A stretch of DNA of 64,000 nucleotides from contig NW_026782015.1 of NCBI RefSeq assembly GCF_031769215.1, forward strand, positions 1,116,001 to 1,180,000, written 5' to 3'. Positions within the stretch are counted from its first letter, which is position 1. Each line of letters begins with the position of its first letter. The position numbers and the translations under genes were made by a program. Of this stretch, positions 35,801-64,000 are shown one piece after another. This DNA is from Ylistrum balloti. Lineage: Eukaryota. Under the pieces are notes generated by a model that was given only the letters and a program-made list of their open reading frames with translations, was not told the origin of the DNA and made no database searches.

Positions 35801-36430
35801 ATATTATTCCTTTAATCAATTTGTCAATTACGTAGTGAAATTCCATACCCTTTTTCACATAGTTGGTAGACTGTCCGATGATATCATGAAGGACATACAA
35901 AAACGATGCAATAGTTACTGAAATTCAAACTTGTATTCTAAAATCAAAGATATCCATCAGCAGGCACTTAGCTCGATGATGAAAAACGAGTATAACATAT
36001 ATCATTTATTTATATAATTATTTTTCATCAGCGAGCCAAGTGCTTGTGATCCTTATATACAGTATATTTCTATAGCTAATGTACACGAAGGAATGAAAAT
36101 ATTATTCCTACCAATATAATACTACATATCATAATTAGCCCAGAATTTTTTTTCAACACACTTAGATGAATATTCAAGCCTGTCATAAACACAGACCGAA
36201 ATCTGTGATACTAAATTGGATCCCTTGTAGTCATGATAATACGGTTCGACACGTTCGTTCGATCAAAAAATTATCTATGAAAACAAGAACATGTTATCGA
36301 AAATGTTATGGATCTTAATAAACCATACATGCTTTCACTTTTTATTAATTTGATAGAGCTAATAGCTTCATATTTCAACGTGATGGGAGCAGATTAATGT
36401 GCTAAACCCTTAGCAGTAAACACTAACCAT
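32881..36430 (-). CDS. RPS18: 40S ribosomal protein S18 (uS13), 152 aa. Exons: 36428-36430 (ATG only), 35601-35699, 35181-35267, 33111-33304, 32881-32956
   Basis: Spliced translation [122 protein letters not shown]; 459 nt total, all GT-AG. Confidence 0.99.
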
Positions 36431-36546
36431 GATGGCGGATTACCGGAAAAGGAAGTCAAGATAGTGAAAATGCTTGATCTGAAAAATGTTTGCATTGGTC
36501 GAATTCGTGATGTATACATCAGACTGATCCAGATGAAGTTGGTGAC
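36431..36546. promoter_or_regulatory. Bidirectional promoter region shared by RPS18 and VPS52
   Basis: 116 bp between divergent ATGs. Contains GATGGCGG (YY1-like), CCGGAA/GGAAGT (ETS-like), ATTGG (CCAAT reverse) and the 14-bp palindrome TGATGTATACATCA. Confidence 0.75.
36445..36455 (-). promoter_or_regulatory. 5'TOP/TCT pyrimidine tract of RPS18 (CTTCCTTTTCC)
   Basis: Pyrimidine tract 14 nt upstream of the RPS18 ATG, as typical of ribosomal-protein transcription starts. Confidence 0.75.
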
Positions 36547-39500
36547 ATGGCGTCAACTGCTGCGGAGCAAAATAAGGTAAGAACACCAACTCATTCTTTT
36601 GCATACTCTTATGTAGGAAATTTTCACATGTTGTAGCATTTACCCAATAAGAATCAATACATGAGCTTCAGTACAGGTACTAAGTAACAGAGTAACATGT
36701 ATATGTTCAGGTCCCGATAATGACGTTCAGAGAAGTCTAATGTAAACATAGCAAGACAAGTGCTGTACTGTATATATATTGGTTTCTTGATCGATAGGAT
36801 TAAACACACTTGCATTCAAACCCAAATCCTTAAATCCATGTTTGTACAAGGCAAACTAATGACGTAAAAAGAGCAGATCGGCGTGTCTTGTATTTCAAAG
36901 TGTTCAAGTAAAATGTTCGGTACAACCATTGATGTGAGTAATAGTTATGCATTCGAGGGATAGTTACCGCTTTGAGTAATCAATTAGTTCCGCATATACA
37001 GTGTCATTGGAAATAGAAACACATAAAGTCCTTGTAAACATTTGCAACAAAAAGGTGTCATATCTTTTCAAAACAATAAGCAATGCAATCTTGTACATTA
37101 ATAATAATATACATTGTCACATTTGCAGTTTGATGATGTTAAAGATATGACACCTTTTTAGTTGCACTTCTTTTAAAACAAACTTTATATATTTCTTTTT
37201 GAGAATAATCCTGTATTTAAATAACTAACTGATTACTAAGCCGATGGAGCATGTTGGTAGAAACAGCCGATAGTAGATTGACCTGGGTTTGATTACTGGT
37301 TGGGGCATTTCATAGGAATGTGTGTTTTCCTTGTTCTTTCACGATGATAATTCATGTAAAAATACTTTTAACTGAAGTTAGTACAAATATTGAAAATAAG
37401 CCCACTACCCCAATGCAATATAATGTACATTGTAAGAATCATTGTGTTGAATAGAGATACAATATAACACAGCCAATCCAAAGTGTAAACATTGGTCTGC
37501 CAATCAATGTTTAATGTTAATAGGACTGCAGAACACAATTCTCTTACTGTGATATTGTTTTATGCATATATACTATAGGACCTTGCTGACAATCTTCAGT
37601 TAAATCTTGGTGAGCTGGACTTAACTTCAGAAGATTTTTGGCTGGAGGAAGCTGATGGTGAGTATCAGTGAAATGGTTGACTGGAGATAACGAATGGTGA
37701 GTATCACTAAAATGGTTGACTGGAGATAACGAATGGTGAGTATCAGTGAAATGTTTGGTAGGAGGAAACTGACAGTGATTACCATTAAAATGGTTGATTA
37801 GTGGAACCTAATGTTGAATGATAGTAAAATGGTTGACTGGAAGAAGCTGATAGTGAATACCAGTAGAATTAGATGACTACCAGTAAATGTTGCTTGGCTG
37901 TAGGATTATTCGTAGGTGGTATAATTCCTTGGTTGCAGGATTGGAAGGTAATTTTCAGAATGTTGGATGGTGTGTAATTACTTGACTGTAGAAATATTTG
38001 ATTTCAGGAAACTGACTGGGTATAACAAATTTTTGGAGAAAAGTTTTATGACAATATTTGAGGTGGATCACTGGCCTCTGACTCTGAATAGTAGAAGGGT
38101 TTTAAATACTTTTGAATTCTCTGGATGTAATGTTTATCGAAATACATGTAGCTCCTCTAAGTCTTTGTGACATTTCATTCTCAGCCTGGGAGACAAACAA
38201 TTCAATACATCTACACAAGGAATTACAGGTAGACAAATAGAAGAATTAAGATACTGGAAAATAGTGGCGGTGTATTCCCTTCACAACTCTTTGTAAAGAG
38301 ATATAAAGAGTTGGTCAGTTTGAATTGGTGTTATAAATGATTAAATAACTGATTTGATTCTATTTTCAGTACATATTCAACAGAATTTGGAAGATGACAT
38401 TGTTAAAGAAGCCCTCAACACTGTAAGTTAATCATCAGTCTTGGATCGCCTTCAGTGAAACTCTCCTAAGATTCACACACATGAAATCAATAGATTTCTT
38501 CTACTTCAAATTGTAGCCTGACAGGCCACTCAAAATGTTACCTTTGCAGGCTGAACTAAAATTTTCTAGAACTACAATATCTGGTTTTGAGGATGATATA
38601 AGAAGTAAGGTTTGTTTAAACTTATAAAGTGATATTTTCTTAGGGATCGGATGGTATAATATGTTTTAAATTTATGTGATATATAATATGTAATACATAT
38701 TTGTCATCATCAGACCATATCAGGGATACATAGCTGTATTTTGTGTTATAATCTGAGCAGGTGAAAGGCATACAAATTTGGAATATTGACAAAGGGAGAC
38801 AATTCTTACATGTTTTTATTTAAGTTGAGGACAATTAGTTGCATTTTGACCTATTCCTTTTCCAAGTCGAAATTGTATGTTATATTGCACATTTTTCCCA
38901 TTTTGATAAAGCAAAAGTTAATTCAGCTTTCATAAATAATGTAGAATCAATGCATTGTTCCCCTTACATTTCAATACTTTCATACAATTGGTACAAGAAT
39001 ATTTTTGGAGAAGTGTATAAAATTGACCTTAAGTCTAATTCTTGTGTGGATTAAGATAGGTGCATGTAGACATTGAAGAAGTTTTTCTTCTAATGTGATT
39101 TAGGGGGTTGACTTGAGGCAGTATTCCAAACAAGTGGAGAAAGAACTACTGGATGTGGAGAATGCCTCCATACAGGACTGTATCCTTGTCAGACTGTTTA
39201 ACATTGGAGAAATTTTAATTTACATCAGAGTAACTTGATTCATATTAAATTAGCTGATACATATAAGATTAAATTGATTCCCTTTTCTGTGATACTTTAA
39301 AGTAACATTTACAGAGGATTTTTTTATCCTCTCAAATGAATCTTAATCCATTTCCCTGATTTACTGTCTACAAGGAAATATTTTCTAAAGTCTCTTGTTT
39401 TTTGCCTTTTGCCCACAGGACAAAAATAGTTGAAATTTAACTCTGGTAAAAAGATGGAGGAAAAACCATGGCAAGTCGATTTTTCCCATATATAGTATTT

Positions 39501-45500: not shown

Positions 45501-48500
45501 GGAATGGTTGGAGAAATAAAGATTAGGTACTAAGGACAAGTGTGGAGAGATACAAACAATGAAGAAAATCACTATTTTGATAATAATAGATTTTAATTAT
45601 TAGGGATAAAATGCATATTTATCCAAAGGCTTCACTTTCAAATTGGCCTAGGTAACTAGACAACTTTTTATTTGCAGTTCGAAGAAGTAGCAGAGCGAGA
45701 GGACTTGATGGGGGTAGAAGACACTGCCAGAAGAAATATTCTTTTTTGGATACAGCGCTACTATCTCCATTGAGATTTCTTTTTTTGTATTTTTTTCATC
45801 CCATCAAAACTAAGGCTTGCTGTATGTTTGACATAAATTGGTCAGTTGCTTTTATGATTAAAAACTTACAGTTTTGCAGTATAAATGTAAGTACACATGG
45901 AGAAAGGAATAGAGTAAAAATGCAGTAGTAACTCACAATCAAAATTTGGTAGGATTACAAATCAGGGGAGATAACTTGTAGTGGCATATTCTTGTGTTGA
46001 CACTATTTGCTCAGTTTTTTCAGCTTTATATCACAAGGTCAATCACTATTGTAAATATTATTAAGAAGAAAAATTGACATGCAATATTTTGTTTATATTT
46101 CTCCCTAACTTTTCTGAAGCTTCTTCTCCACGAAACCAACATTAAAAAATAGGTCAACAGTGTTTACTCTCGGTAACCGTGGTAATATCCTTGGATCAGA
46201 TCTGGAGGGTCCCATCATCGTCCCTCATGCAGCTCAAAAGTCTGACACCAAGGTATGGTTTTAGCCTCTAAAACAGCATTTATTATAATTACAAAATATG
46301 TTTGGCCCAAATTTAATGAAAAACAGAGAATGACTTGTTCACTGTAATAATAATGACACAATTACTTTTTGCAATATCAGTAACTTTACATTGACAAATG
46401 ATGTGATTCCAGCAGAATGACCTGCACTACAACTTTGAGTGTCTGATTATATTGCAGTACAACTTTGTTTGTCTGATTATATCGCAGTACAACTTTGTTT
46501 GTCTGATTATATCGCAGTACAACTTTGTGTGTCTGATTATATTGCAGTATAACTTTGTGTGTCTGATTATATTGCAGTACAACTTTGTGTGTCTGATTAT
46601 ATAGTAGTACAACTTTGAGTGTCTGATTATATTGCAGTACAACTTTGTGTGTCTAATTATATTGCAGTACAACTTTGTGTGTCTGATTATATTGCAGTAT
46701 AACTTTGTGTGTCTAATTATATTGCAGTACAACTTTGTGTGTCTGATTATATAGTAGTACAACTTTGTGTGTCTAATTATATTGCAGTACAACTTTGTGT
46801 GTCTGATTATATTGCAGTACAACTTTGAGTGTCTGTTCCGTAGTATCCACTTCGCCCTGATGGACAACTGTTGTCGAGAATACCTGTTCCTTGTTGATTT
46901 CTACATGGCATCTGGTTCCGCCTCTATAGACCTATTTAATGCTATCATTGGCAAAACCCTCACACTCTACCTGGTAAGTTCCCTGCCTGGTAACCAAGTC
47001 TCACACTCTACCTGGTAAGTTCCCTGCCTGGTAACCAAATTTCACACTCTATCTGGTCAGTTCCCTGCCTGGTAACCAAAATCTCACACTCTACCTGGTA
47101 AGGTCCCTGTCTGGTAACCAAAATCTCACACTCTACCTGGTAAGTTCCCTGTCTGGTAACCAAAATCCCCTGTGAAATGCATTTGCAAGGGATATTAAGT
47201 TCGGCTCTGTATGTCCGTCCATTTGTGGGCTTTTCCAGGCTATAACTCCAAAACCATTCAACTCGACTTCACAAAGCTTGCTGAATATATTATTTGCCCT
47301 ACTTGTGCCTTTTGCTATTGACAGCATTCTATTTGTTGTATTTTTTGTGTTACCATGGAAACATAGACAAAAAACACTAAATTTCTGGTTACTTTCCATG
47401 TTACAACTTCTAAACCATTCCACTCCACAAAACTTTCTGTATATATTATTATTATTTTGCACTAGCGATTTTACAAATTGTTATATATAAATATCATTTT
47501 TGGTTTTACACCAACAGCTCCTTGTCTGATTTGAGTACCCGTAATGGAGTTGGGAGATCAATAGTTTGCTCATATGACTTCTGTGTAAGATTTTGATGGT
47601 TTTATCTTTACACAGAAACAAATGGAGGAGTACATCAATGACTGCTATGATTCTATCGCCATTTTTCTCTCCATTCACATCGTATATCGCTTCCATTCCA
47701 TCATGCAGAAGAGATCAGTGCCAGCTCTAGACAGGTATATGTAAATGAATTGACTGTTCTGTAGTTTCACAATCAAGTCTTAGTCTGTAATCACCTGCTG
47801 TACAATATCACAATAAAAATACAACAAAGTTTGGAAATTATGATGATTTTTGAAGTGTTTTTGTATGACTTTTGAAATGTTTTAGGTACTGGGACGCACT
47901 ACAACAAATGATGTGGCCAAGATTTGAATACATCCTCGACCTTAACATACAGAGTGTCCGTGACTGTGACCCACAGAAGTTTGGCCACATTGACAACCGG
48001 CCACATTATGTAAGTTACATCAGACAACAAAACAAGCTTCATATGTTTGATGTCTGTTAACAAGGGATCAAACATATTACATAAAACAAATATTTATTTC
48101 CATCAGTTTTTTTTAATTCATGTTGATCAGTTGTATTCCTGAGAAAAATAAAAGTTGTGGAGTTTGCAGCTGCAGGTCTAAAGTTTGTAGAACTGTATTT
48201 TTATTCATCATTTTTATTTCAATAGATTACACGACGTTATGCTGAGTTCTCAGCAGCTATTGTGGGAATCAACCAATCATTTCCCAACGAGAGAGTCCAG
48301 CGCATCCTGGAGCAGCTGCAGACAGAAGTGGAAAATTTCATTCTAAAGATGGCTGCTGAGTTTCCACACCGCAAAGAACAGCTGATCTTCCTAATCAACA
48401 ACTATGACATGATGTTGGGGGTCATTATGGTAGGTCATAGTTATCAGAGCAATGACACAATGTTGGAGGCTATACCAGACCAACGTATCACAGGTGTGAC

Positions 48501-50217
48501 ACAGTGACAGGGGATATAATAGGTCAACTTTGACACAGTGTTAGGGGCTATACCACATCAACGTATCATAGATGTGACACAGTGACAGGGGATATAATAG
48601 GTCAGGGTATTGCTGCTGTATCACAGCTGTGACACCATGTTTGAGCTACTTTAGGTCAAGGTATCAAGACAGTGACATAGTGTAAGAGGCTATAACAGGT
48701 CAACAAATCACAGATATGACACAGTGCTAGGAAACATTTTGGTCAAAGTCGTTACAGCAGTAACATAATGTCATGGGGTCAGTAGATTTAAAAAGTCACA
48801 TATTTTTCATTGATCACACAGTATTTTCTTGTTTTGTATGAAATTCAAACTGAGGGATATTCACACATCCATGGACACATTCTGACATGACATCATGTTA
48901 ATGGTTATGTACACATTGTAACTAAAGTTTGTCTTTTTTTAAGGAGAGAACGACAGAAGATTCCAAAGAATCTGAAAGTTTTAAGGAATTGCTAACTGCA
49001 CGCACAACAGAGTTCATTGAGGAGGTTCTTTCCCCTCACTTCGGGGGTCTCATTAGCTTTGTAAAGGACTGTGAGGTGATGTTGGAACGTGGTCACACTG
49101 ATAGTCTCAAACACGAGGAGAGTAAGTAGTGAATTTCATGTTATAAAAGTACTAGGCAAGTGTAAAGGAAAGGTGACTTAATTCAGGATTTCCATTGGTA
49201 ACTCTTGACCACAATTCAATTTTGTTGCATTCATAGATGATACAAGTCTTGTTTACAGAACTCCATGTCATAAAAATAAGTTAGTGAAATCCTGGTGCTA
49301 TGGGTGCCAAGGGTCATGCTAATTTATTGCTGTCACTACATGGCGCAGCAATCTTATTAATGGATGCATTCATGTGTTGTCAGGCCAATACTGGTATGTT
49401 TGTATCTGTGATATGTATGTCACAGGGTTGGTAATGATGTGTTTGTAGTTGTGATATGTATGTTATAGGGTTGGTAATGATGTGTTTGTAGTTGTGATAC
49501 CTATGTTACAGGACGGGTACAGCAGATAGTGAGAGGCTTCAACAATGACTGGAAACGGGCCCTAGAAGTGATCAATGGTGATGTAATGAGAGCATTTACA
49601 AACTTCAAAAATGGAACACAGATACTACAGGTGAATGATAATTGATGTAATTCATATATCAGTTATAGTAATACATCTTTTATTGGAGTTACAAAGTCTT
49701 TTGTAGTCTATATATCACATATAGCTATATCTAGGTTACAAAGCCTCTTGTTGTCCATATATTAAGTACAGCAATATCTAGGTTACAAAGACTCTTGTTG
49801 TCCACATATCAAGTACAGAAATATCAGGGTTACAAAGCCTCTTGTTGATCAAGTACAGAAATATCTGGGTTACAAAGATTCTTTTTTAGGATGACTTCTG
49901 TTGTAATTTTCTATTATTATAGAGGATTATAGATGGGTTGCTGAACTGAATCAATGTGGCTTATGCTGACAAGTCTCACTGTCACATGGCAAATTGTACG
50001 CCATTGTGTGCATTGTATGACGATTGTCTACAGAGCCAGGAATAATGATAACATAATCTTGTTGTTGTAGGGAGCCCTGACCCAGCTGATTCAGTATTAC
50101 CATCGCTTCCAGAAAGTTCTCTCACAAGGACCCTTCCGTAATATGGCCATCAGGAACGAGCTCATCAACATTCACCATGTCATGGTGGAAGTAAAGAAAT
50201 ATAAACCAACATTTTAG
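36547..50217 (+). CDS. VPS52: Vacuolar protein sorting 52 (GARP/EARP subunit), ~700 aa, 19 exons: 36547-36576, 37579-37657, 38370-38422, 39104-39179, 39792-39859, 41216-~41340 (corrupted), 43458-43519, 43920-44070, 44388-44488, 44966-45098, 45678-45735, 46119-46252, 46818-46973, 47616-47734, 47886-48009, 48226-48429, 48944-49121, 49512-49630, 50071-50217
   Basis: Exon translations match VPS52 throughout: LGELDLTSEDF, VHIQQNLEDDIVKEAL, GVDLRQYSKQVE, IREFLMQKIYSFRKPM, FEEVAEREDLMGVEDTA, YWDALQQMMWPRFE, ITRRYAEFSAAIV, FLINNYDMMLGV, GALTQLIQYYHRF, ELINIHHVMVEVKKYKPTF*. Confidence 0.96.
37243..37310 (+). mobile_element. Degenerate tRNA-like SINE head
   Basis: A-box-like TGGAGCATGTTGGTAG and B-box-like GGTTTGATTAC; no full cloverleaf. 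Confidence 0.3.
40270..41430. repeat. 54-bp minisatellite around VPS52 exon 6
   Basis: GATGTAGAGGTGTATGACAGGCAGATGTTCACTAACCTTGCTAGGATGTACTAT units. Confidence 0.95.
41430..43350. repeat. 27-bp G-rich minisatellite, ~1.9 kb
   Basis: ACAGGTCACAGGGTGGGTACAGATAAT about 70 copies. Confidence 0.98.
43740..43915. repeat. 21/42-bp tandem repeat abutting the VPS52 exon-8 acceptor
   Basis: TGT(A/G)ATATTATATTAACT units. Confidence 0.8.
45130..45560. repeat. Purine-rich degenerate tandem repeat
   Basis: GTGTGGGGAGATACAGGTAAAGAATTGAG-like units. Confidence 0.7.
46425..47163. repeat. 30-bp acceptor-derived array (46425-46830) and 41-42-bp donor-derived array (46958-47163) bracketing VPS52 exon 13
   Basis: Units contain the exact junction sequences ATTGCAG|TACAACTTTG and CTCTACCTG|GTAAGTTCC. 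Confidence 0.95.
49720..49880. repeat. ~47-bp tandem repeat
   Basis: TTACAAAGCCTCTTGTTGTCC..AAGTACAG..ATATCTAGG about 4 copies. Confidence 0.8.
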
Positions 50218-53296: not shown

Positions 53297-56200
53297 ATGG
53301 CGGCCTTCCAATACAACTATGCGATTGTTTGTCGTATTCCAGACAGTTTCCAGGACATTCAGTCACAACAGGCAGATGCAGACCCCATAGATATTGAAAA
53401 GGCACGCGAGGAACACTCCGAATTTATCAAAACAATGAAAAAATGCGACGTGCGCGTGATTGAGCTGGCATCGGACGAAGCGTACCCCGAATGTCCCTTC
53501 CTGGAGGACTGTGCTCTTGCTATTGGAGGTGTGGCGCTTATCCTCAGACCTTTCTCGAAAACACGGCATGGAGAGGTAAGCTATGTTCAGTTACATTAGA
53601 TATACATGTACAATAGTCTACAAACGTGAAAATATGATGTTTTGAGTTTTTTCCCCACATACACCTTACTTCCAAACGTTCCCATCTTCCACTCTGATTC
53701 ATCAATAGAATTATTCAGATATCCGTTAGACAGGTTGGAAACATTCTTGGATTTACGGGGATTGACTGGAACTCCGAATAGTTTTCTCCTCATAATAGGA
53801 AGCAACATAAAGCATTAATAATATTTCATTCTGTCGTTTATTTCCCAAATATATGTTTTATTGTCACTGATCACAATGTGATGGCTTGCATTGATGGGTC
53901 AGAAAAATCGGGTGAATAATATATTAGATATAAATAGTCAGTGGCTACAATCAGGGATTGAACTTCTTTCAATGCTTTGTACACTTAACTAGTTCTTAAC
54001 ATAACTGAACTATGTTATCATGGTACACAATAAGTTTAAATGTATCTGTAATACCATCCTAAAAATAATCACATTCAGAATCTTTCTCATTAAATAAATC
54101 ATGCCATGCAATTCAAGAATAAAGTTCCCTTCATCTCGATATCATAATAGACTGGAACATGATAACATGATTGTGACCTTTTTTTTTGTACAAATCTCTA
54201 ACTTGGTATTATGTAGCTGAATGATCTCCCACGAAACAAGCACTATAACTTTGTGGCAGGTTACATGATATATTATTAGATTTGTGGCAAATTTCACATC
54301 TGTTGGGTAGAATGGGTTATGCTTGTAAGATACATGCAGGATTTGTTGAAGCATCACCTATAATGCAAAACCGGTCAACCGTGAAAATAAAGCAAATGAA
54401 ATAAGAAACTGTCAAGATGTGTTGTGGTTGTATTTCATTACTATCACTTGACGATTATACAACCGCCCTGCATACCTAGAGGTATCCACACCGACAGCTA
54501 GGGACCTTAGCTGGAACTTCATTGTCATCTGCGTTGGTTCCAAACTTTGAACCTTAAGCTACATCTTGAGACATTGATGTTGTGTCTGCGGAACCATCCT
54601 TGATACTCCAAGGGTTACCATCAATTTAGCTATCTGCACACCTGAAACATATCATTGGAAAATTGAAGGATCCATATACAACACCTTGTAGACAAGGTGA
54701 AAAGACGAAATTTATCCTTTGATGTACATCAAACGAATCTGGAAGTCGCATAACAGTATGTTGCACTGGCTTTAAAGTTGGGTGTCGCTCCTTTGTAATC
54801 CTCAAAATGATTCATGTTATCATCCTGTTATTGGCCAGTTTTTTCTCCTTGAACCAATCAAATTACTTTGCTTGTACCTTCAATTTTGCCATGGCATAAT
54901 CTGGGGATGCAGGATTTGAAAATGATCATAACCCCTGGAGTATAGACGATGCTGCCAAACCTAATAGTTCATGGTCCAATAGAGAACGTCCCCATAAGTA
55001 CATTTGAAAGAAACGGAAGTATTTTTCTCATACCAATGATTATCTTGAATACTTCGTTTGTGAAGTAGAGACCAATGGAACCATACCCCCATTGTTTAAT
55101 GGAGAAGTTCTTGATATCAGGTTAACATTGTTTGTAAACCTGAATCCCACGAGTATCAAAGGTAATAGTGCCCTTATACTGGTACAATGGTCACATATAA
55201 AATTAATTATTTGTGAGTTTTACACTATTATTAATACCGATTAGTCAATATTGAATTTATACCTTGTTGATCCACCACGCAATCAAGACTTGATGTCAAT
55301 TAATTTGTGATCATGTCACTTCAATTTGAGTTTGTAAAGCCAATGACTTCACCTCTAGTTTCACTTGGTGCAACCGTTCTTAAAGGTTTTGTGTACATTT
55401 GTCATATTTGATGATGGCATTATCTTGGATCCCGGCCTCCTCCATAGAGCTCAAGTCAAAACTACAAAATCATTATTTCCTTCTTCTATTTTGTTTCTCA
55501 CATTATTAATGACAGTTGATGAGTTAGGTTCCCCAAAACTTTTAGACTCAGTCCAGTTTCTCACTGGTCTACTATTTATTAGCAAATTGATTGTGCGAAT
55601 GGTGCAGTGCAGTGCATGGTGATAACATGTTTAGAATGGATAGCAATCCGAAAAAGGGATAGATATATACTGAATGTTGCATTAACATTGATATCAAAGT
55701 GATTGAAGGGGCTGGATACATGTAACTGCATAATGATGATTGCAATAACATCAAAGCTGATAGTACTGACCTTACACATAGCTCAATTTATACTATAAAT
55801 TCTCACTTTTAAAATTACTTGTTAGTATGAAACTCAAATGACCATGTTGTTTCAATGTACAACTAATTTTGCCCTATTTGTATACTTAGATTCTCTAAGG
55901 CTATGGATTTTAGAAATATCCATGCCAAGACCTATATGTGAGTATAATGACATAAATCTCTACTGCAATCCTGTTAACACTAACCTCTGTTTGTCTTCAC
56001 CTAGGTTGCAGGGATTCGAAAGCTCTTACAGGAACTGAACCTCCATGTATACGAGATCAAGGATCCTGATGCGTATGTGAATGGAGGTGATGTCTTCTTC
56101 ACTGGTGAGTGTAGACAAGGCTGCATATGTTTATCACGACATAACAACTAGGACTTTAAAAGTGGGCTTTTCAGTTAAACTTTAACTTATAAAGGATCTC

Positions 56201-59200
56201 TAAGCATGCATTATATGTATCATGTAAATCTTACCATTGTAAAAGGAACACAATGTGTCTGTTGTATACCTGAGGCATCCAGTAGAACCATCAATAAGGT
56301 TCAAATCTACGGTGAGGAAGAAGATGTAGCAAAACATATTAAATAGTCAACAATTCATAATATTTACTTCTGGACTGTTGTTTCTCTTAATCAATAAGCT
56401 CAAAATGACAAACAGTAGACCATGAAAACACTATGAAAGGACTACAGCCATTCATGTGGAACAATCAGTTGATTTTACACACAAGATGATCAGTTGTATC
56501 AATATGTCCAAAACTTATTTATGTAAGAGTAAGCTCCCCTTTGTCCAACATTACCAAAGTGATAAAATTAAACCTACTGTTGAGAAGTGAAATTCCACTA
56601 ATTGTTCAAACAACCCTTGATCAAGAACAAAGAAGTTGTCGTTCTTTTATGATATCTTGCGTTGCAAAATGACAGATCGACAGAATCTCTTTTGTGATTT
56701 CATTCTCTGCAGGATTTAAGAATTTTTCATTTCTTTAGCTAGCATGCACCATGAGATGTATAGAGAGTTAGTGCTATCCATTGTCACCATGAAAATGAAA
56801 AAAAGTTAATTAAAGTCCTAAACACATTATTATATGTATAATTAAAGCAGCTATACATGTTGCCTGGTAAGATAATGAAGTGTCACATGCTTCCACTTCA
56901 CCATCACTGAAAAAGTCAGGTGACAACCAGATGAATTCATGTAAATTGTCTTCCTGCTATGATACTTCAATATAGCATTTGTGAAATTATCTGCATATAA
57001 CAGTTTAAGGGATTTTGCCAAAGTGCATATATCTTGTGATACCTGTCAGAATTTTCACTGACATTTTTAGTCACCTGCTGGAGGAATTCCAGCTTCTCAC
57101 TGATACATCTGGGAGTGCATTGAATAAAAAAGAAGTCGGGGGGAGGGGGGATGGGTGAAGGGAAAAAACAAGGAGGCTTAAAAAGATATTTTGTAGTTTT
57201 AATGAATCAGTCGAAAAGGGTAAGCAAACAATATTTTGAATTTTGGCCAGATGATTTACAGTAAATCATGAATACTTTATTTCACAAACTTACCTGTTTA
57301 GACATAATCGTGAATACATGATTTCACTTTAAATTCATGTGTGCTGAACTATTGGTTATATATTGGTAACCATATCAGCATGCTTGTCATCAAGAGTTAA
57401 TTTTGTATAAATAATGGTGAAGTATTTGAATTAGCAATTGATTCTCCTTGCGTATTAACACAGAAATAAATCACACACGAAATATGTATGTATAAGTGAT
57501 TTACAGTAACTTTTCAGTGATGATATGACATTTATAGTTTTGACCAATCAGAGCACATATTTTCCTGTTCAGATGTTATTGACACATAAGTTGAATGAAC
57601 AAGTTGCTTTATCATCAAATCTCCTGTGTTTATTTAGGATTTTCTTTCATTTGGTACATAAAAACAATTTTGTTATTGATTCTTAGTCCATAACAGCATA
57701 AAATGGTTGAATACCATGTAAAACAGAGCTTACTATAGAATGGTATTGTCTTGTTGACATGTAAAAGAATACTACCATCAAACTGTTTGACATCAAATAG
57801 CATACTAATTTTTTTTAACACTGGTTTCTTTTATGAAATAACAAGTAAAACTGTCCCTAACTTTGTTGAACACTTGTTTATTTCATGTTTGGTTCAGGTT
57901 TTTCTTTAATATCGGTTTATTTTATTTTTTAATTCAATAAAAATAATATTATTTACTCATATGACAGAATAAATGTGTATTTAGGTATTATGTTGTACTT
58001 CAGATATATATATATATTTAACAAGAAATCATTAAATGTCCTCTATTTACTGATGATTACGGTATTTTTGGAGACAATTCCAGTCGTCACAAGACCAAAT
58101 TGTATATACAAGACTGTCTTTCACAGGACCAAACTTTATATAAAGCTCCATTCAGTCACTCTACCAGATCGTATACATATATGTAAGGCTGCTGTTACAA
58201 TACCAACAGTTTTTCAAGACTCCTATCTAGTATCGTTACCACTCCCAATGTCAGTAAGGACTCCAGGTTTTTGGTGCAAGAATGTCTCCTTTTTCCTTTT
58301 TCTTTTGACTGTATTTTGTACAAACCACAACTCCAGCAGAAAGAATGCAGATTTTGATGAAGATACTGACACTTCATGTTCATAAGTTTATGCTTAGAAA
58401 CATGGTGAGACAAGCTGCTAAAGTTGTCAGGAAGGAAAATAGACAAAAGAAAAACAAATCTAATGCAGCAACGAAATCAGCCCATGTCAACACTTCAGCC
58501 TCTTTGTCACAGGGATATACAGGAAAACTTTGTCCTGGTTCCATTTGTCTGCATTCAGTACCAGATTTAAACTCTTCATTGTCTTTGCTTTGTTGAGAAT
58601 TTATAGTGGGTATGTCTTTTGTGCGTACATCAAGGAAGGAGCTTGAGGTTGGGTTTTGAGATTGGCAGGACACAGAGTGTTGTGGTAAACTGTCTGGCTG
58701 TGGAGCTATCTTCAATTTTACATGAAAACAAGTCATTCTTCTAGTGAGTCGTATGAAGCACTGAACACATGAAGGTGCAGTTTCACTGTGTAGATGATTA
58801 TGCAAACGTACCTGGATCACTGTCACCATGACAATCAGTGTTCCAAGAGAAAGTAGGGCTAGTAAGTAGGCACTCAGGTAGCTTGTTGTCTGGGAGTTAA
58901 CAGGCAGAGAGCTACTAACAATGGTGAGAAAGACGGCAAATGCTAGGTAAACTGTCATACTGTAGCTGATCTTCTCACCGCTTTCAACAGGAATGATAAA
59001 AGTGAAGACCGCAAGAATGGAGAGGAAGAGGATGGGACAGATGATCGTTAGTAAATAATATTGGGGTTTCCTTTTCAGGTCCAAAGACACTTCAATCTGA
59101 TGAACATCAATTAAACTTACGCTCAGTCTGACTTCAGAGCTAACCATGTCCCACAGTGCATTAGGTTTGAAGGCTTGAAGGGCCACCTTGTCAGAACCCA

Positions 59201-62191
59201 GATCGAAGCTAGTGACTTCATTTGGTGTAGCCCATGCTCCAAATATCAGTTGGCAGGACTGACTGTCGAAAGGGAAGTTCACAATGTCTATGTAGCAGAT
59301 TGTCTCAAATACCTCATACGGCTTCCATAAGATTACCCCATCATATCTAATTTGGACTAAGATGACATCGTCTCCTAACTCTGTAAGCTTTGTGAAGCCA
59401 TTCTGTAGAGTGAGATCTGGTTTCCATACCAGATTCTGTGGCATGTTGAAAGTTTCAATACCACTATAGTCACTAGGATTCCATGTAAGATTTTTGTCTG
59501 TCCATGTTAATTCCAGGAATCCTGTTGTTGTTAACTTTTCTTCTACCTCATCCAGAACATTGATTCCATTTAAGTGAAAAGTAAGATATACAGTGATAGG
59601 AACTTTGGGGTCAAGCTGTGGAGGAATCAGGCTGTCGTAGTCTCTATTGTTGAATAATTCATCCTTCAGTGTTTTGAGAATAGCTACGGACTGAGACCGG
59701 GTTACCACCGACAGTAGTATTACTACTGTATAAACTATCTTCTCCATGCCAGGTATTGGTCAGTCCTGTTTCACTGTCGCTTTAAAGTCTTCCTCCTCAG
59801 TCAAAGCTTCGTTACTGATACAGTTACCTATTAACCTGTATTATACCTGCTGATTGATGATAACTATCTGATACGCACCATTGACCACAAACCATTAAGT
59901 TGATGATAATTGTTGATCGGAGACTTACCCAATCTTCAGCCTGTATTTATGGAAGGGTTTATCAACTCATTTTTTATGTTTAATAACAATGAATCAATGT
60001 AGATGTGTACTAAGTGATTATTGTTCCAAACTTGTTTGTTAATGAGATGCTCAGCCTTGGGGAAATCTATGTTAATTGTATAGGTATTAAAGAGCCTGGC
60101 TTTCCATTGTTTACTGTAAATCCTATGGGGGGATCATTGTCACAGTACAAACCTCACATAGGATCTCGTTAACGTTAGCATGCATCACTGAGTTTACTTT
60201 TACACAAGCCTCTTCTGATGTGTTAATTATATGGCTTACCTGATGTATAAACAGATTTATTTTATCACTTCAGCAGATACAGACAAATAGTTTCAATCTA
60301 GTACATATTAGTACTATAATTGTTGTAATTCTAGCTATATCACTGTTCATTAACAATTTTATGTTTACCATCCCCCAGCAACAGGGCTGTCATAGAGATT
60401 TAGTTTTGATATGGTAAACACATAGTTGGATACACATAAACATATGGAGGAAGGGCCTGCAACCCCTTAATATTACGCTCATTGTTGTTAATTAAAATTT
60501 TGTGTTGTGAGCATAAACTTTGCTTGCATTAAAACTAGGATAATAAACCATGGTGGATACATTTGTCATACTAAGAGGATGTTCTATGTAACAACCGCAG
60601 TATCTGAAACTCCATAATTACAGAATTTTTGCCCTTTGTTAAAATTTTTTGTCAAATAAAGTCATTATTGGGGAGCATTTATCAGTTTCATTGATAATCT
60701 TGTCTTAATATTTACCCCATATTATCATATCATGAAGCTCTACACTTTATTATATTAAGGTGGCTATGGGTCCAGGTTAAAGGGTCAAAGGTCACCTTTG
60801 ACAACTTCTGTAGATTCATTATGTATAGAAACAGGATGATTTGAGGTCTTACGACAGACATTCAATCATCATGGAGTAATCTAGAATATGGGGAATATTA
60901 CCTGTTGTGGAAAAGGGGGAATTTTTGGCCTATTTTGAGAAATTTCAGTCAGACTTTTTCGTTAGAATTCAAAAGAGGAATATAGTAAACATTTATAAAC
61001 ATACATGAAGATTACATAAATAAAATACAATGTTGTTAAAAGGTAAGATTGATATATCTTGTTCATGGTGCCATGATTTGTAAATATAATTAGTAAAATA
61101 ATACTAATTAGCTGTTTGGGGGAAAATTTTTCCTATTTTTTTGAAAATTTTCACATGTTTTAAATATATTATCGCGATGGAGAATTTGTTAATATTCAGA
61201 GGGGGAAACATACTACTTTGGGAATACTACCTTTCCAGGAAGTAAAATCCTGTCTAGATTACTCCCTAATTATTCACTCATTTGATGGTGAGATAGGGGC
61301 ATCTTAACTCTTATAGGAAGATTATTAAGTTGCTAACACCACAGAAGCCTCGTGTTTGTCTGTTAATTCATCTTTCTTATTGGGTTGAGATCCCTCAATC
61401 ACAACTCCAAGGGGATGAAATATTCTTTAAATCTGTGTGGCAGACACATGGAATTAATCTCAATCAATAAATTTACATCATTTTAAATCTTTATTGGTGA
61501 ATTCACATCTTTCATATTTTCATTGATAAAGTAACATCTGTTTAAAACTTTGTTGATAAATTTACATCATTTTAAATCTTCATGGATAAAGTCACATCTT
61601 TTATACTTTCATTGATTAAGTGACAAGTTTATAATGCATATGTATGAGATTGAATTGTGATTAATGGGAAGTAACTCCATTGTTTTCCACAGGTAAGGAG
61701 ATCTTTGTGGGCGTTGGTTCTGATGAGAGGAGTAATGAAAGAGGGGCCAATGCAATAGCCAGTGTTTTCCCTGAGTACAACGTTACACCCATTAAAATGA
61801 GGGGGGATGTTCGCCTCAAGTCCCTAGTGTGTATGGCCGGAAGAGACATCATAGCTTGTGGCAACAGTCCCATGGCCCTCAATGTACTCAACGTAAGTCC
61901 TACAGTGGTGCAATGTAATACAGACAATACCCAAGATCTTTATGTTAGCAAGTGTACAGAATAATACACAATACAATTATTAAAGACACATGAATATATT
62001 TATAGGGATTTGATGTGTCAAGAACCCATTTATAGACTTTAAGTATTTGTTGTTTACAGCAAATCCGTACCACTGCTCAGTACAGCTACAAGATCCTAAA
62101 GCTGGACAATGACCGTGCAGCCAACATGTTGTATGTAAACGGACGACTTATACATCGTACACGAAGTGAGATTGGAGAGAAGTGCTACAGT
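53297..62191 (+). CDS. DDAH: Dimethylarginine dimethylaminohydrolase-like protein, 3' end outside window. Exons: 53297-53575, 56005-56104, 61693-61892, 62060-62191
   Basis: Translation MAAFQYNYAIVCRIPDS..IELASDEAYPECPFLEDCAL..RP..R..E / DPDAYVNGGDVFFTG / KEIFVGV..RSNERGA..RLKSLVCMAG / DRAANMLYVNGRLIHRT aligns colinearly with DDAH1/2; GT-AG, phases consistent. Terminal exon with the nucleophile Cys not found in the window. Confidence 0.9.
54597..54949 (-). repeat. Dispersed element copy 2 with ~75-bp inverted arms and internal palindromes
   Basis: 37/38-nt match of 54853-54890 (reverse complement) to 20779-20816; perfect palindrome TTTGATGTACATCAAA at 54718-54733. Confidence 0.7.
58380..59747 (-). 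CDS. Intronless nicotinic acetylcholine receptor-like (Cys-loop) subunit, non-alpha, cation-type, nested in DDAH intron 2
   Basis: 455-aa uninterrupted ORF: signal peptide, WKPDL loop A, Cys-loop CYIDIVNFPFDSQSC (C-x13-C), LKRKPQYY pre-TM1, four TM segments, GEKIS before TM2 and L9'. No vicinal CC in loop C. Confidence 0.95.
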   Translation of the reverse strand: MEKIVYTVVILLSVVTRSQSVAILKTLKDELFNNRDYDSLIPPQLDPKVPITVYLTFHLNGINVLDEVEEKLTTTGFLELTWTDKNLTWNPSDYSGIETFNMPQNLVWKPDLTLQNGFTKLTELGDDVILVQIRYDGVILWKPYEVFETICYIDIVNFPFDSQSCQLIFGAWATPNEVTSFDLGSDKVALQAFKPNALWDMVSSEVRLSVSLIDVHQIEVSLDLKRKPQYYLLTIICPILFLSILAVFTFIIPVESGEKISYSMTVYLAFAVFLTIVSSSLPVNSQTTSYLSAYLLALLSLGTLIVMVTVIQVRLHNHLHSETAPSCVQCFIRLTRRMTCFHVKLKIAPQPDSLPQHSVSCQSQNPTSSSFLDVRTKDIPTINSQQSKDNEEFKSGTECRQMEPGQSFPVYPCDKEAEVLTWADFVAALDLFFFCLFSFLTTLAACLTMFLSINL

Positions 62192-63074
62192 GTGAGTATT
62201 TGCACTGACCCTGTACACGGTAACCTTACAGTACAACACTGCTAAAAACGCCAATATATTCTTTACAACTAAAACATGATACACCAACAACATAGACAGC
62301 TGTTCACTGGCAGCATTCAATTTGATTGACAGTATTCTTCTACTCTATTTTATCTTGATGAAAATAACTGTTTAAATCAATTTTATTCCCTCTATGACTT
62401 CACATGGCTGTGTTTTTGTCCTGTCTGTTTGTCTGGAAACTAAAACACACCTGTAAAACTAAAACACACCTGTCAGTGGGTGTTTTCGCTGAGCCAATCA
62501 GGCAATAAGTAGTAAGAGTTTTTTACGGTAAACATTGACAATTAATGTGCACATGACATGACAGGTGGGCGGAGCTTGTTACAGATGCTTACAAATTGCA
62601 GACAACACTTTTTCTTAACTATATCATTCTTTGGTTACACTTTGCATTCAATTTCATTTCCATCATAGCTTATGCTTTACAAATATAATCTATTTTAAGT
62701 TTTAAAAAAATCACCAAAGTTTAATTTGGTATAATGATATAGCTTGGCTTTTAGAGATTTATTTTTTAGGTTTATCTTCCCTGTCGACAGCCAGACTACA
62801 TAATCTGACTTTTGTCTGTCCCTAAAAATTTGAGAATAAGAATAGATCTAGAGATTTGGGCGGATGAGAAGAGAAAAACTTTATTCTTGATAATACAGCT
62901 GAATCAAGTTAAAATAGAAATATGTATATCGGATAGGTTTTGCATAATTACCCGTAATTTATATGTATGGAAGAATAAATAACATGTACAACAAAAAGAA
63001 AGAAATGGACAATATTGTATTATGTGCTGTCAATTTTCATGAAAACACAACTGTATAGATTAATTACATTTGAA

Positions 63075-64000
63075 TACATACACCCTCTATAATAACACCA
63101 CAACATCTGTACACATACACCCTCTATAATAACACCACTTCATCTGTACACATACACCCTCTATAATAACACCACTACATCTGTATACATACACCCTCTA
63201 TAATAACACCACAACATCTGTACACATACACCCTCTATAATAACACCACTAATACACACACCACTACATCTGTACACATTCACCCTCTATAATGACACCA
63301 CTACATCTGTACACATACACCCTCTATAATAACACCATTATATCTGTACACATACACCCTCTATAATGACACCACTACATCTGTACACATTCACCCTCTA
63401 TAACACCACTACATCTGTACACATACACCCTCTATAATAACACCACTTCATCTGTACACATACACCCTCTATAATAACACCACTACATCTGTACACATAC
63501 ACCCTCTATAATAACACCACTACATCATAGATCTACTATATCTGTACACATAAACCCTCTATAATAACACCACTACATCTGTACACATACACCCTCTATA
63601 ATGACACCACTACATCTGTACACATTCACCCTCTATAATGACACCACTACATCTGTACACATACACCCTCCATACACCCTCTATAATAACACCACTTCAT
63701 CTGTACACATTCACCCTCTATAATAACACCACTACATCTGTACACATTCACCCTCTATAATGACACCACTACATCTGTACACATTCACCCTCTATAATAA
63801 CACCACTACATCTGTACACATTCACCCTCTATAATAACACCACTACATCTGTGCACATTCACCCTCTATAATAACACCACTACATCTGTACACATACACC
63901 CTCTATAATAATACCACATCTGTACACATACACCCTCTATAATGACACCATTACATCCGTACACATTCACCCTCTATAATGATACCACATCTGTACACAT
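63075..64000. repeat. 37-bp minisatellite in DDAH intron 4, runs off window end
   Basis: ACATCTGTACACATACACCCTCTATAATAACACCACT about 25 copies. Confidence 0.97.

Follow-up and report, generated by a model that had tools for sequence, protein, structure and literature searches.

DDAH is regarded as a conserved enzyme that clears ADMA, an endogenous inhibitor of nitric oxide synthase, and human DDAH1 relies on a triad of Cys274 as the nucleophile, His173 as the general base and Asp127 as the acidic residue (Glu in some bacteria). What does a protein of this family do when those residues are replaced? The question is raised by a gene of the saucer scallop Ylistrum balloti. The window, by which we mean the whole stretch of 64,000 nucleotides that was analysed (G000:C158:1116001-1180000), contains exons 1-4 of a DDAH-family gene that a first-pass annotation had read as non-hydrolytic. 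The best explanation, and in our judgement quite a probable one, is that the locus encodes a single, spiralian-orthologous and strongly conserved non-hydrolytic DDAH pseudo-enzyme that acts by binding.

All of its exons lie on the plus strand. Exon 1 (53297-53575) supplies the start codon and 93 codons and carries Glu at the position of Asp73, Glu78 and Asp79 (in FLED) and Arg98 (in TRHGE). Exon 2 (56005-56104, 100 nt) contains the YVNGGD motif, exon 3 (61693-61892, 200 nt, phase 1) contains Arg145 (in ERSN) and DVRLKS, and exon 4 (62060-62191, 132 nt) is the final exon within the window. Borders are AG/GT throughout, the 237 codons are free of stops and the spliced model agrees with RefSeq. 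For the end of the gene, we searched 40 kb downstream of the window by tblastn using the C termini of homologues and recovered two alternative terminal exons, 5a at G000:C158:1180630-1180773 (L002:2630-2773; 64630-64773 in window numbering) and 5b at G000:C158:1182433-1182612 (L002:4433-4612; 66433-66612 in window numbering). Each has a good polypyrimidine/AG acceptor, is in phase 0 with exon 4 and brings its own stop; exon 5a encodes ...KVGGSVINTVLLV...STLP and exon 5b encodes ...KARGTLSSMVLFI...SNF. The model ending in 5a is, letter for letter, RefSeq XP_060065708, 'DDAH1-like isoform X1' (284 aa, P0186), and that ending in 5b is XP_060065709, isoform X2 (296 aa, P0182). A weak minus-strand tblastn match with two Cys downstream (L002:3246-3187, E 0.06) was dismissed as chance.

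Catalytic triad and terminal exons

At the site of the catalytic Asp127 of human DDAH1, the scallop gene has AAT, encoding Asn (56080-56082, plus strand, in YVNGGD of exon 2), and at the site of His173 it has CGC, encoding Arg (61812-61814, plus strand, in DVRLKS of exon 3). When single exons were aligned to PDB sequences with phmmer, scallop 'ayvNggdvfft' paired with 'atlDggdvlft' of human DDAH1 and 'dvRlks' with 'glHlks'; the numbers 127 and 173 were assigned by residue counting. Both substitutions had been called in the first-pass annotation, and for each the codon and the PDB alignment agree.

The fate of the nucleophile is decided by the terminal exons. In an alignment of 159 sequences, the Cys274 column holds Asn in X1 (exon 5a) and Ser in X2 (exon 5b), and full translation of exons 5a and 5b revealed no Cys anywhere in either and no new His. 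The first-pass annotation had counted two of three triad residues as lost and had proposed inspecting the last exon for the Cys; it was right about Asp and His, but because neither of the two alternative exons holds a Cys, all three residues are absent. Misalignment of the Cys column can be ruled out, given that the terminal exons contain no Cys at all and that HMMER, which ranks the C274S variant of human DDAH1 (3P8P) first among PDB entries when the whole protein is searched, places the scallop Ser on residue 274. What defines a competent DDAH (EC 3.5.3.18), a nucleophilic Cys, a general-base His and an acidic triad residue, was not found at any of the three sites. Judged by its residues, the scallop homologue is predicted to be incapable of the Cys-His-Asp mechanism, and we infer the absence of activity from the residues themselves. 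As regards this mechanism, the non-hydrolytic reading holds, with Asn, Arg and Ser/Asn at 127, 173 and 274.

The substrate-binding set gives a mixed picture. It had been described as kept, and the 159-sequence alignment bears this out for Glu at 73, Glu78, Asp79, Arg98 and Arg145; Asp269 is replaced by Arg or Gly, and the Arg at 269, the second in the pocket, belongs to isoform X2. Exons 5a and 5b each encode the last strand and the loop of residues 268-276, which form the pocket floor, followed by differing tails. The a-type tail terminates in a conserved K-x-[IV]-[IV]-S-T-L-P, and the b-type tail has a conserved S-N-[IL]-x3-D-x3-[YF] motif within a stretch of predicted disorder. Conservation of so short a motif within a disordered tail suggests that the b-type tail may bind a partner. 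The two exon types are shared by bivalves (scallops, oysters and Mytilus) and gastropods (Babylonia, Haliotis, Littorina and Physella), and their duplication therefore predates the split of these classes.

Constraint, fold and copy number

Orthologues from Pecten maximus and Mizuhopecten yessoensis are at least 90% identical to the Ylistrum protein, and each has both isoforms. Their coding sequences, rebuilt from the genomes, translate exactly into the database proteins. Both genes have six exons laid out as in Ylistrum, 5a preceding 5b, and both carry AAT and CGC at the two sites; a base-call error is ruled out because these codons are shared among scallop genomes. Across the 237 shared codons, pairwise dN/dS among the three species was 0.033-0.054 (dS 0.65-1.2). 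For exon 5b it was 0.06-0.14 (dS 0.72-1.30) and for exon 5a 0.07-0.32, at an unusually low dS of 0.13-0.40. We note that dS is far lower in exon 5a than elsewhere in the gene, a pattern to be expected if the coding sequence here also carried splicing-regulatory signals. A dN/dS of 0.03-0.05 marks a maintained protein, neither an error nor a pseudogene. The first-pass description of an intact, maintained homologue is thus borne out by a stop-free frame, canonical splice sites and strong constraint in three scallops, and the dN/dS comparison that it had called for gave low values over the shared codons. Loss of catalytic residues and purifying selection, the two marks of a pseudo-enzyme, are found together here, in a clade that has been kept across spiralian phyla.

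A fourth pectinid is represented by a 1,227-nt Logan contig with YVNGGD, DVRLKS and the 5b tail; its coding sequence runs unbroken across the splice junctions and so derives from spliced RNA. A search of public sequencing runs for the Ylistrum stretch returned one DNA-like run and no RNA run, and expression in Ylistrum itself is read from the RefSeq models and from the contig of the related species.

The AlphaFold2 model of X2 (P0182) has a pLDDT of 90.4, with uncertainty confined to the tail at 271-296, and superimposes on human DDAH1 with a TM score of 0.85-0.92 and an rmsd of 1.5-1.9 A at 32% identity (Foldseek). The full-length protein matches human DDAH1 with an E value of 1.7e-42 (phmmer) and Pfam PF19420 (DDAH_eukar) with 30.5 bits against a cut-off of 23, which places it in the DDAH family of the pentein, or guanidino-group-modifying, fold. 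With separate exons as queries, Pfam gave a weak match for exon 1 only.

Does the genome hold a second, competent copy? Assembly-wide searches with exon 1, exon 3, the canonical DDAH P0228 of a gastropod and a profile built from 26 canonical members returned this gene as the sole match. Canonical DDAH was not found in the one Ylistrum assembly, which was searched exon by exon with a loose first filter; a six-frame scan of the genome with PF19420 missed even the true gene and is too insensitive to count as evidence. The best 120 relatives of P0228, drawn from a database that includes many bivalve RefSeq proteomes, comprise six named gastropod genera and many vertebrates, with no named bivalve or cephalopod among them. 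Bivalves thus appear, from their sequences, to lack any canonical DDAH, and from one assembly and these ranked lists we infer that scallops probably lack any DDAH-type ADMA hydrolase.

Family history and order of loss

To place the scallop gene we collected about 500 homologues by a search with exon 1 of 1.84 billion representatives and by word searches. Asp127, His173 and Cys274 are found together in vertebrates, amphioxus, echinoderms, cnidarians, crustaceans, Limulus and a second gastropod gene, with exceptions at 127, where one amphioxus copy and one Limulus copy have Glu. This canonical comparison group was picked for having Cys, and its 32 of 32 Cys is by construction. Mollusc 'DDAH1-like' proteins generally have Ser at 274 when they end in the b-type exon and Asn, Arg or Ala when they end in the a-type exon. 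Reading positions 127, 173 and 274 in turn, heterodont and unionid bivalves have Asp, His and Ser; oysters have Glu, Gln and, in the b-type exon, Asn; Pinctada has Glu, Gln and Ser; Mytilus has Glu, Arg and Ser; and scallops have Asn, Arg and Ser, Gly or Asn. The change from Asp127 to Asn is confined to pectinids. The Cys-less state extends to a nemertean, an annelid, a flatworm and a bryozoan, and column counts gave a residue other than Cys at 274 in 38 of 38 members of the spiralian set and in all 22 insects (Ser in 21, Ala in the remaining one). Asp79, Arg98, Gly128, Asp130 and Lys175 are invariant in all 38 spiralian members, and Asp79, Arg98, Glu101, Gly128, Asp130, an FTG motif, Asn147 and Lys175 are invariant or nearly so in every group. 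Arg145 is replaced by Asn in heterodont bivalves and by Trp in insects.

We built a careful IQ-TREE phylogeny of 68 rows, in which vertebrates are represented by DDAH1 only, without DDAH2, and deep nodes are weak. Molluscs, the annelid, the nemertean, the bryozoan and the flatworm form a spiralian clade (support 100/98) whose topology matches the species tree and which is sister to an arthropod clade within a protostome clade (100/95); hemichordates, echinoderms and chordates fall outside the latter. The scallop gene accordingly sits outside the vertebrate clade, read here from DDAH1 only, and shows no descent from the vertebrate DDAH1/DDAH2 duplication. A divergent extra paralogue was also considered and ruled out, because the clade tracks the species tree and the genome has no second copy. 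By its position the scallop gene is best read as the orthologue of ordinary bilaterian DDAH.

By parsimony on this tree, Cys and His were each lost six times and the acidic residue once, and all six His losses fall on Cys-less lineages, which fits an order in which the nucleophile went first and the helpers, now useless, followed. The column counts and the tree indicate that the loss of Cys274 is old and spiralian-wide and that insects lost it independently. The first-pass annotation had pointed to RLK in the Drosophila homologue CG1764 and suggested an alignment across phyla that might mark an old protostome clade. The Drosophila motif is indeed present: orthologues from D. mojavensis and D. 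obscura read KRLK, with Arg at His173, Ser at 274 and changes at Asp79 and Arg145. The change from His to Arg is not, however, the mark of such a clade. Most insects and molluscs keep His, and the Drosophila loss is separate from that of scallops because most other insects retain the residue; the alignment, run across molluscs, an annelid, insects and deuterostomes, instead shows an old loss of Cys and a repeated loss of His.

Two further observations were made on the tree. The second gastropod DDAH, with a canonical Asp-His-Cys triad (P0228, P0073, P0306, P0307, P0201 and P0315), groups with anthozoan cnidarians (87/85); this weak position may mean that an old paralogue survived only there, or may be an artefact of the tree. 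Isolated and recent changes from Cys274 to Ser, each with Cys-bearing close relatives, are seen in the acorn worm Glandiceps (compared with Ptychodera), in one of two krill copies and in Penaeus (P0191 and P0199; P0231 and P0221; P0205). Nucleophile loss seems to recur easily in the DDAH family.

The history that we propose runs as follows. Cys274 would have given way, in most cases to Ser, before the spiralian phyla split from one another. Without its nucleophile the protein would have had no further need of His173, which could change to Gln or to Arg in the pteriomorph bivalves, and Asp127 would have passed to Glu and then, in scallops, to Asn. Throughout, the protein would have kept its five-bladed DDAH fold and the greater part of the central pocket (Glu73, Glu78, Asp79, Arg98, Arg145, Lys175 and GGD). 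The mutually exclusive exons 5a and 5b, dating back at least to the split of gastropods and bivalves, would rebuild the pocket floor at 268-276 and add different conserved tails. The protein would then work as a binder instead of a hydrolase of methylarginines: its re-tuned pocket would take a small polar ligand, or its tails would engage partner proteins.

Possible roles and genomic neighbourhood

Human and bovine DDAH1 (EC 3.5.3.18; PDB 2JAI, 3I2E and 2C6Z) have the same fold, at an rmsd of about 1.6 A, and the scallop protein keeps their Glu78, Asp79, Arg98, Arg145, Lys175 and GGD. It differs from them in the changes Asp127 to Asn, His173 to Arg, Cys274 to Ser or Asn and Asp269 to Arg or Gly, and in having two alternative C-terminal exons and an extended tail. 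The loss of Asp269 together with the addition of one or two arginines to the pocket argues against a cationic guanidino ligand. We speculate that Arg173 pairs with Asp79/Glu78 and fills the pocket.

The main alternative, put forward in the first-pass annotation, is that the protein is a sensor or buffer of methylarginine or arginine whose dead pocket can still bind ADMA, L-NMMA or arginine. We consider this unlikely, although it is not without merit: the clamps that DDAH1 uses for the alpha-carboxylate, the alpha-amino group and one guanidino nitrogen are retained (Glu73, Glu78, Asp79, Arg98 and Arg145), Asp79 and Arg98 are invariant in all 38 clade members, and a Cys-to-Ser mutant of the Pseudomonas aeruginosa enzyme still binds substrate (PMC10256801; PDB 1h70 is among the fold matches of the scallop model). 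Retained clamps do not guarantee binding, however. RESC5 of Trypanosoma brucei (PDB 8DPK) has a DDAH fold in which the catalytic Cys and His are replaced by Ala and Pro, and it retains the same four residues, the equivalents of Asp73, Asp79, Arg98 and Arg145, yet it binds neither ADMA nor citrulline and is a non-enzymatic component of the RNA-editing RESC complex (PMC9980740). It superimposes on the scallop model with a TM score of 0.72 at 15% identity, has no detectable sequence homology to it, is kinetoplastid-specific and does not belong to the same family. In the scallop pocket itself, the guanidino contact Asp269 has become Gly or Arg, Arg173, joined by Arg269 in X2, would place positive charge at the substrate guanidinium site, and the clamp residue Arg145 varies within the wider group (Asn in heterodont bivalves, Trp in insects).

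A second alternative, that the protein is still an enzyme and uses other residues or chemistry, such as a Ser nucleophile or a different substrate, is in our view very improbable. Most clade members (gastropods, heterodont bivalves and most insects) carry Asp-His-Ser, which in form is a classical hydrolase triad, and the pocket is conserved across the clade. In scallops, however, the His and the Asp of such a triad are also gone (Arg and Asn), X1 has Asn rather than Ser at 274, the terminal exons introduce no other Cys or His, and a DDAH with its Cys changed to Ser is unable to hydrolyse ADMA (PMC10256801). The idea of an assembly or annotation artefact, or of a decaying pseudogene, has nothing in its favour beyond the single DNA-like public run that holds the stretch and can practically be discarded, given the agreement of three independently assembled scallop genomes in their AAT/CGC codons and exon structure, the spliced contig from a fourth species, and a stop-free gene with canonical splice sites and a dN/dS of 0.03-0.05.

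A conserved pseudo-enzyme that acts by binding, the reading we prefer, has parallels in the family, in which dead DDAH-fold proteins, DDAH2 and RESC5, are already known. DDAH2 is a vertebrate-specific duplicate that keeps Asp and His, whereas the scallop protein has lost both and belongs to the protostome branch. Human DDAH2 has no ADMA hydrolase activity, and structural alignment shows Ser or Leu in place of the nucleophile and a Cys that is displaced downstream (PMC10256801). The displaced Cys is also seen in insects (T-S-C-C) and in oyster isoform X2 (N-C-C). Insect 'DDAH1' of the Drosophila CG1764 type has likewise lost Cys274, and its Drosophila orthologues share Arg at His173 with scallops. 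These losses are independent of the scallop ones: insects belong to the arthropod clade, next to crustaceans and Limulus that bear the Cys, and unlike scallops most of them keep His, retain Asp127 and have Trp at Arg145.

DDAH has been stated to be absent from molluscs and annelids (PMC9980740), which the scallop and other spiralian genes contradict. Public databases annotate the invertebrate genes as 'DDAH1-like' or 'dimethylargininase', and the scallop gene itself is already in RefSeq. Our literature search found no account of triad loss in invertebrate DDAH. What is new, in the literature searched, is that the main protostome DDAH lineage is, by sequence comparison, nucleophile-less across Spiralia and insects, and that pteriomorph bivalves then apparently lost His and scallops the whole triad, under strong constraint. 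The apparent lack of a canonical DDAH in bivalves is likewise new. If DDAH is incapable of its mechanism in spiralians and insects, and bivalves have no other copy, the functional annotation of hundreds of genomes would be wrong and the handling of ADMA in molluscs and insects would need a different explanation. That catalysis was lost repeatedly while purifying selection stayed strong suggests that the DDAH fold has a second role, one that is not enzymatic. Human DDAH2 poses the same question since it was shown to be unable to hydrolyse ADMA, and the scallop, oyster and Drosophila orthologues are tractable systems in which to pursue it.

A broader reading, which we offer tentatively and hold to be possible but on balance doubtful, is that main-line bilaterian DDAH has a conserved function independent of catalysis, that hydrolase activity was given up on at least six occasions (in stem Spiralia, in insects, in mites, in a shrimp, in a krill paralogue and in an acorn worm) and that bivalves and insects have no DDAH-type ADMA hydrolase. 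If it is true, the nitric-oxide/ADMA control of bivalves and insects must differ, and these proteins could serve as natural models of what vertebrate DDAH2 does.

Several features of the surrounding DNA were recorded. A minisatellite with a 37-bp unit and about 27 copies (80-95% matches) occupies 63065-64000 and runs on to about 64078 (L002:1065-2078) within intron 4, which separates exons 4 and 5a; it lies just upstream of exon 5a. VPS52 lies directly upstream of the DDAH-like gene on the same strand, with C-terminal exons at 46767-48507 (plus strand) and 36426-36576 (Pfam Vps52_C, up to 5.7e-19), giving the order RPS18, VPS52, DDAH-like. Human RPS18-VPS52 and DDAH2 are all located in the 6p21.3 MHC region; the scallop order may be a remnant of proto-MHC linkage, which would fit orthology with vertebrate DDAH. 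Nested antisense in intron 2 (58380-59747, minus strand) is an intronless gene for a Cys-loop ligand-gated ion channel of 455 aa, with Neur_chan_LBD (5.5e-43) and Neur_chan_memb (3.9e-16) Pfam domains and the Cys-loop C-x13-C; the channel is found in intron 2 of Pecten maximus and Mizuhopecten as well, also on the minus strand and at 59-61% identity.
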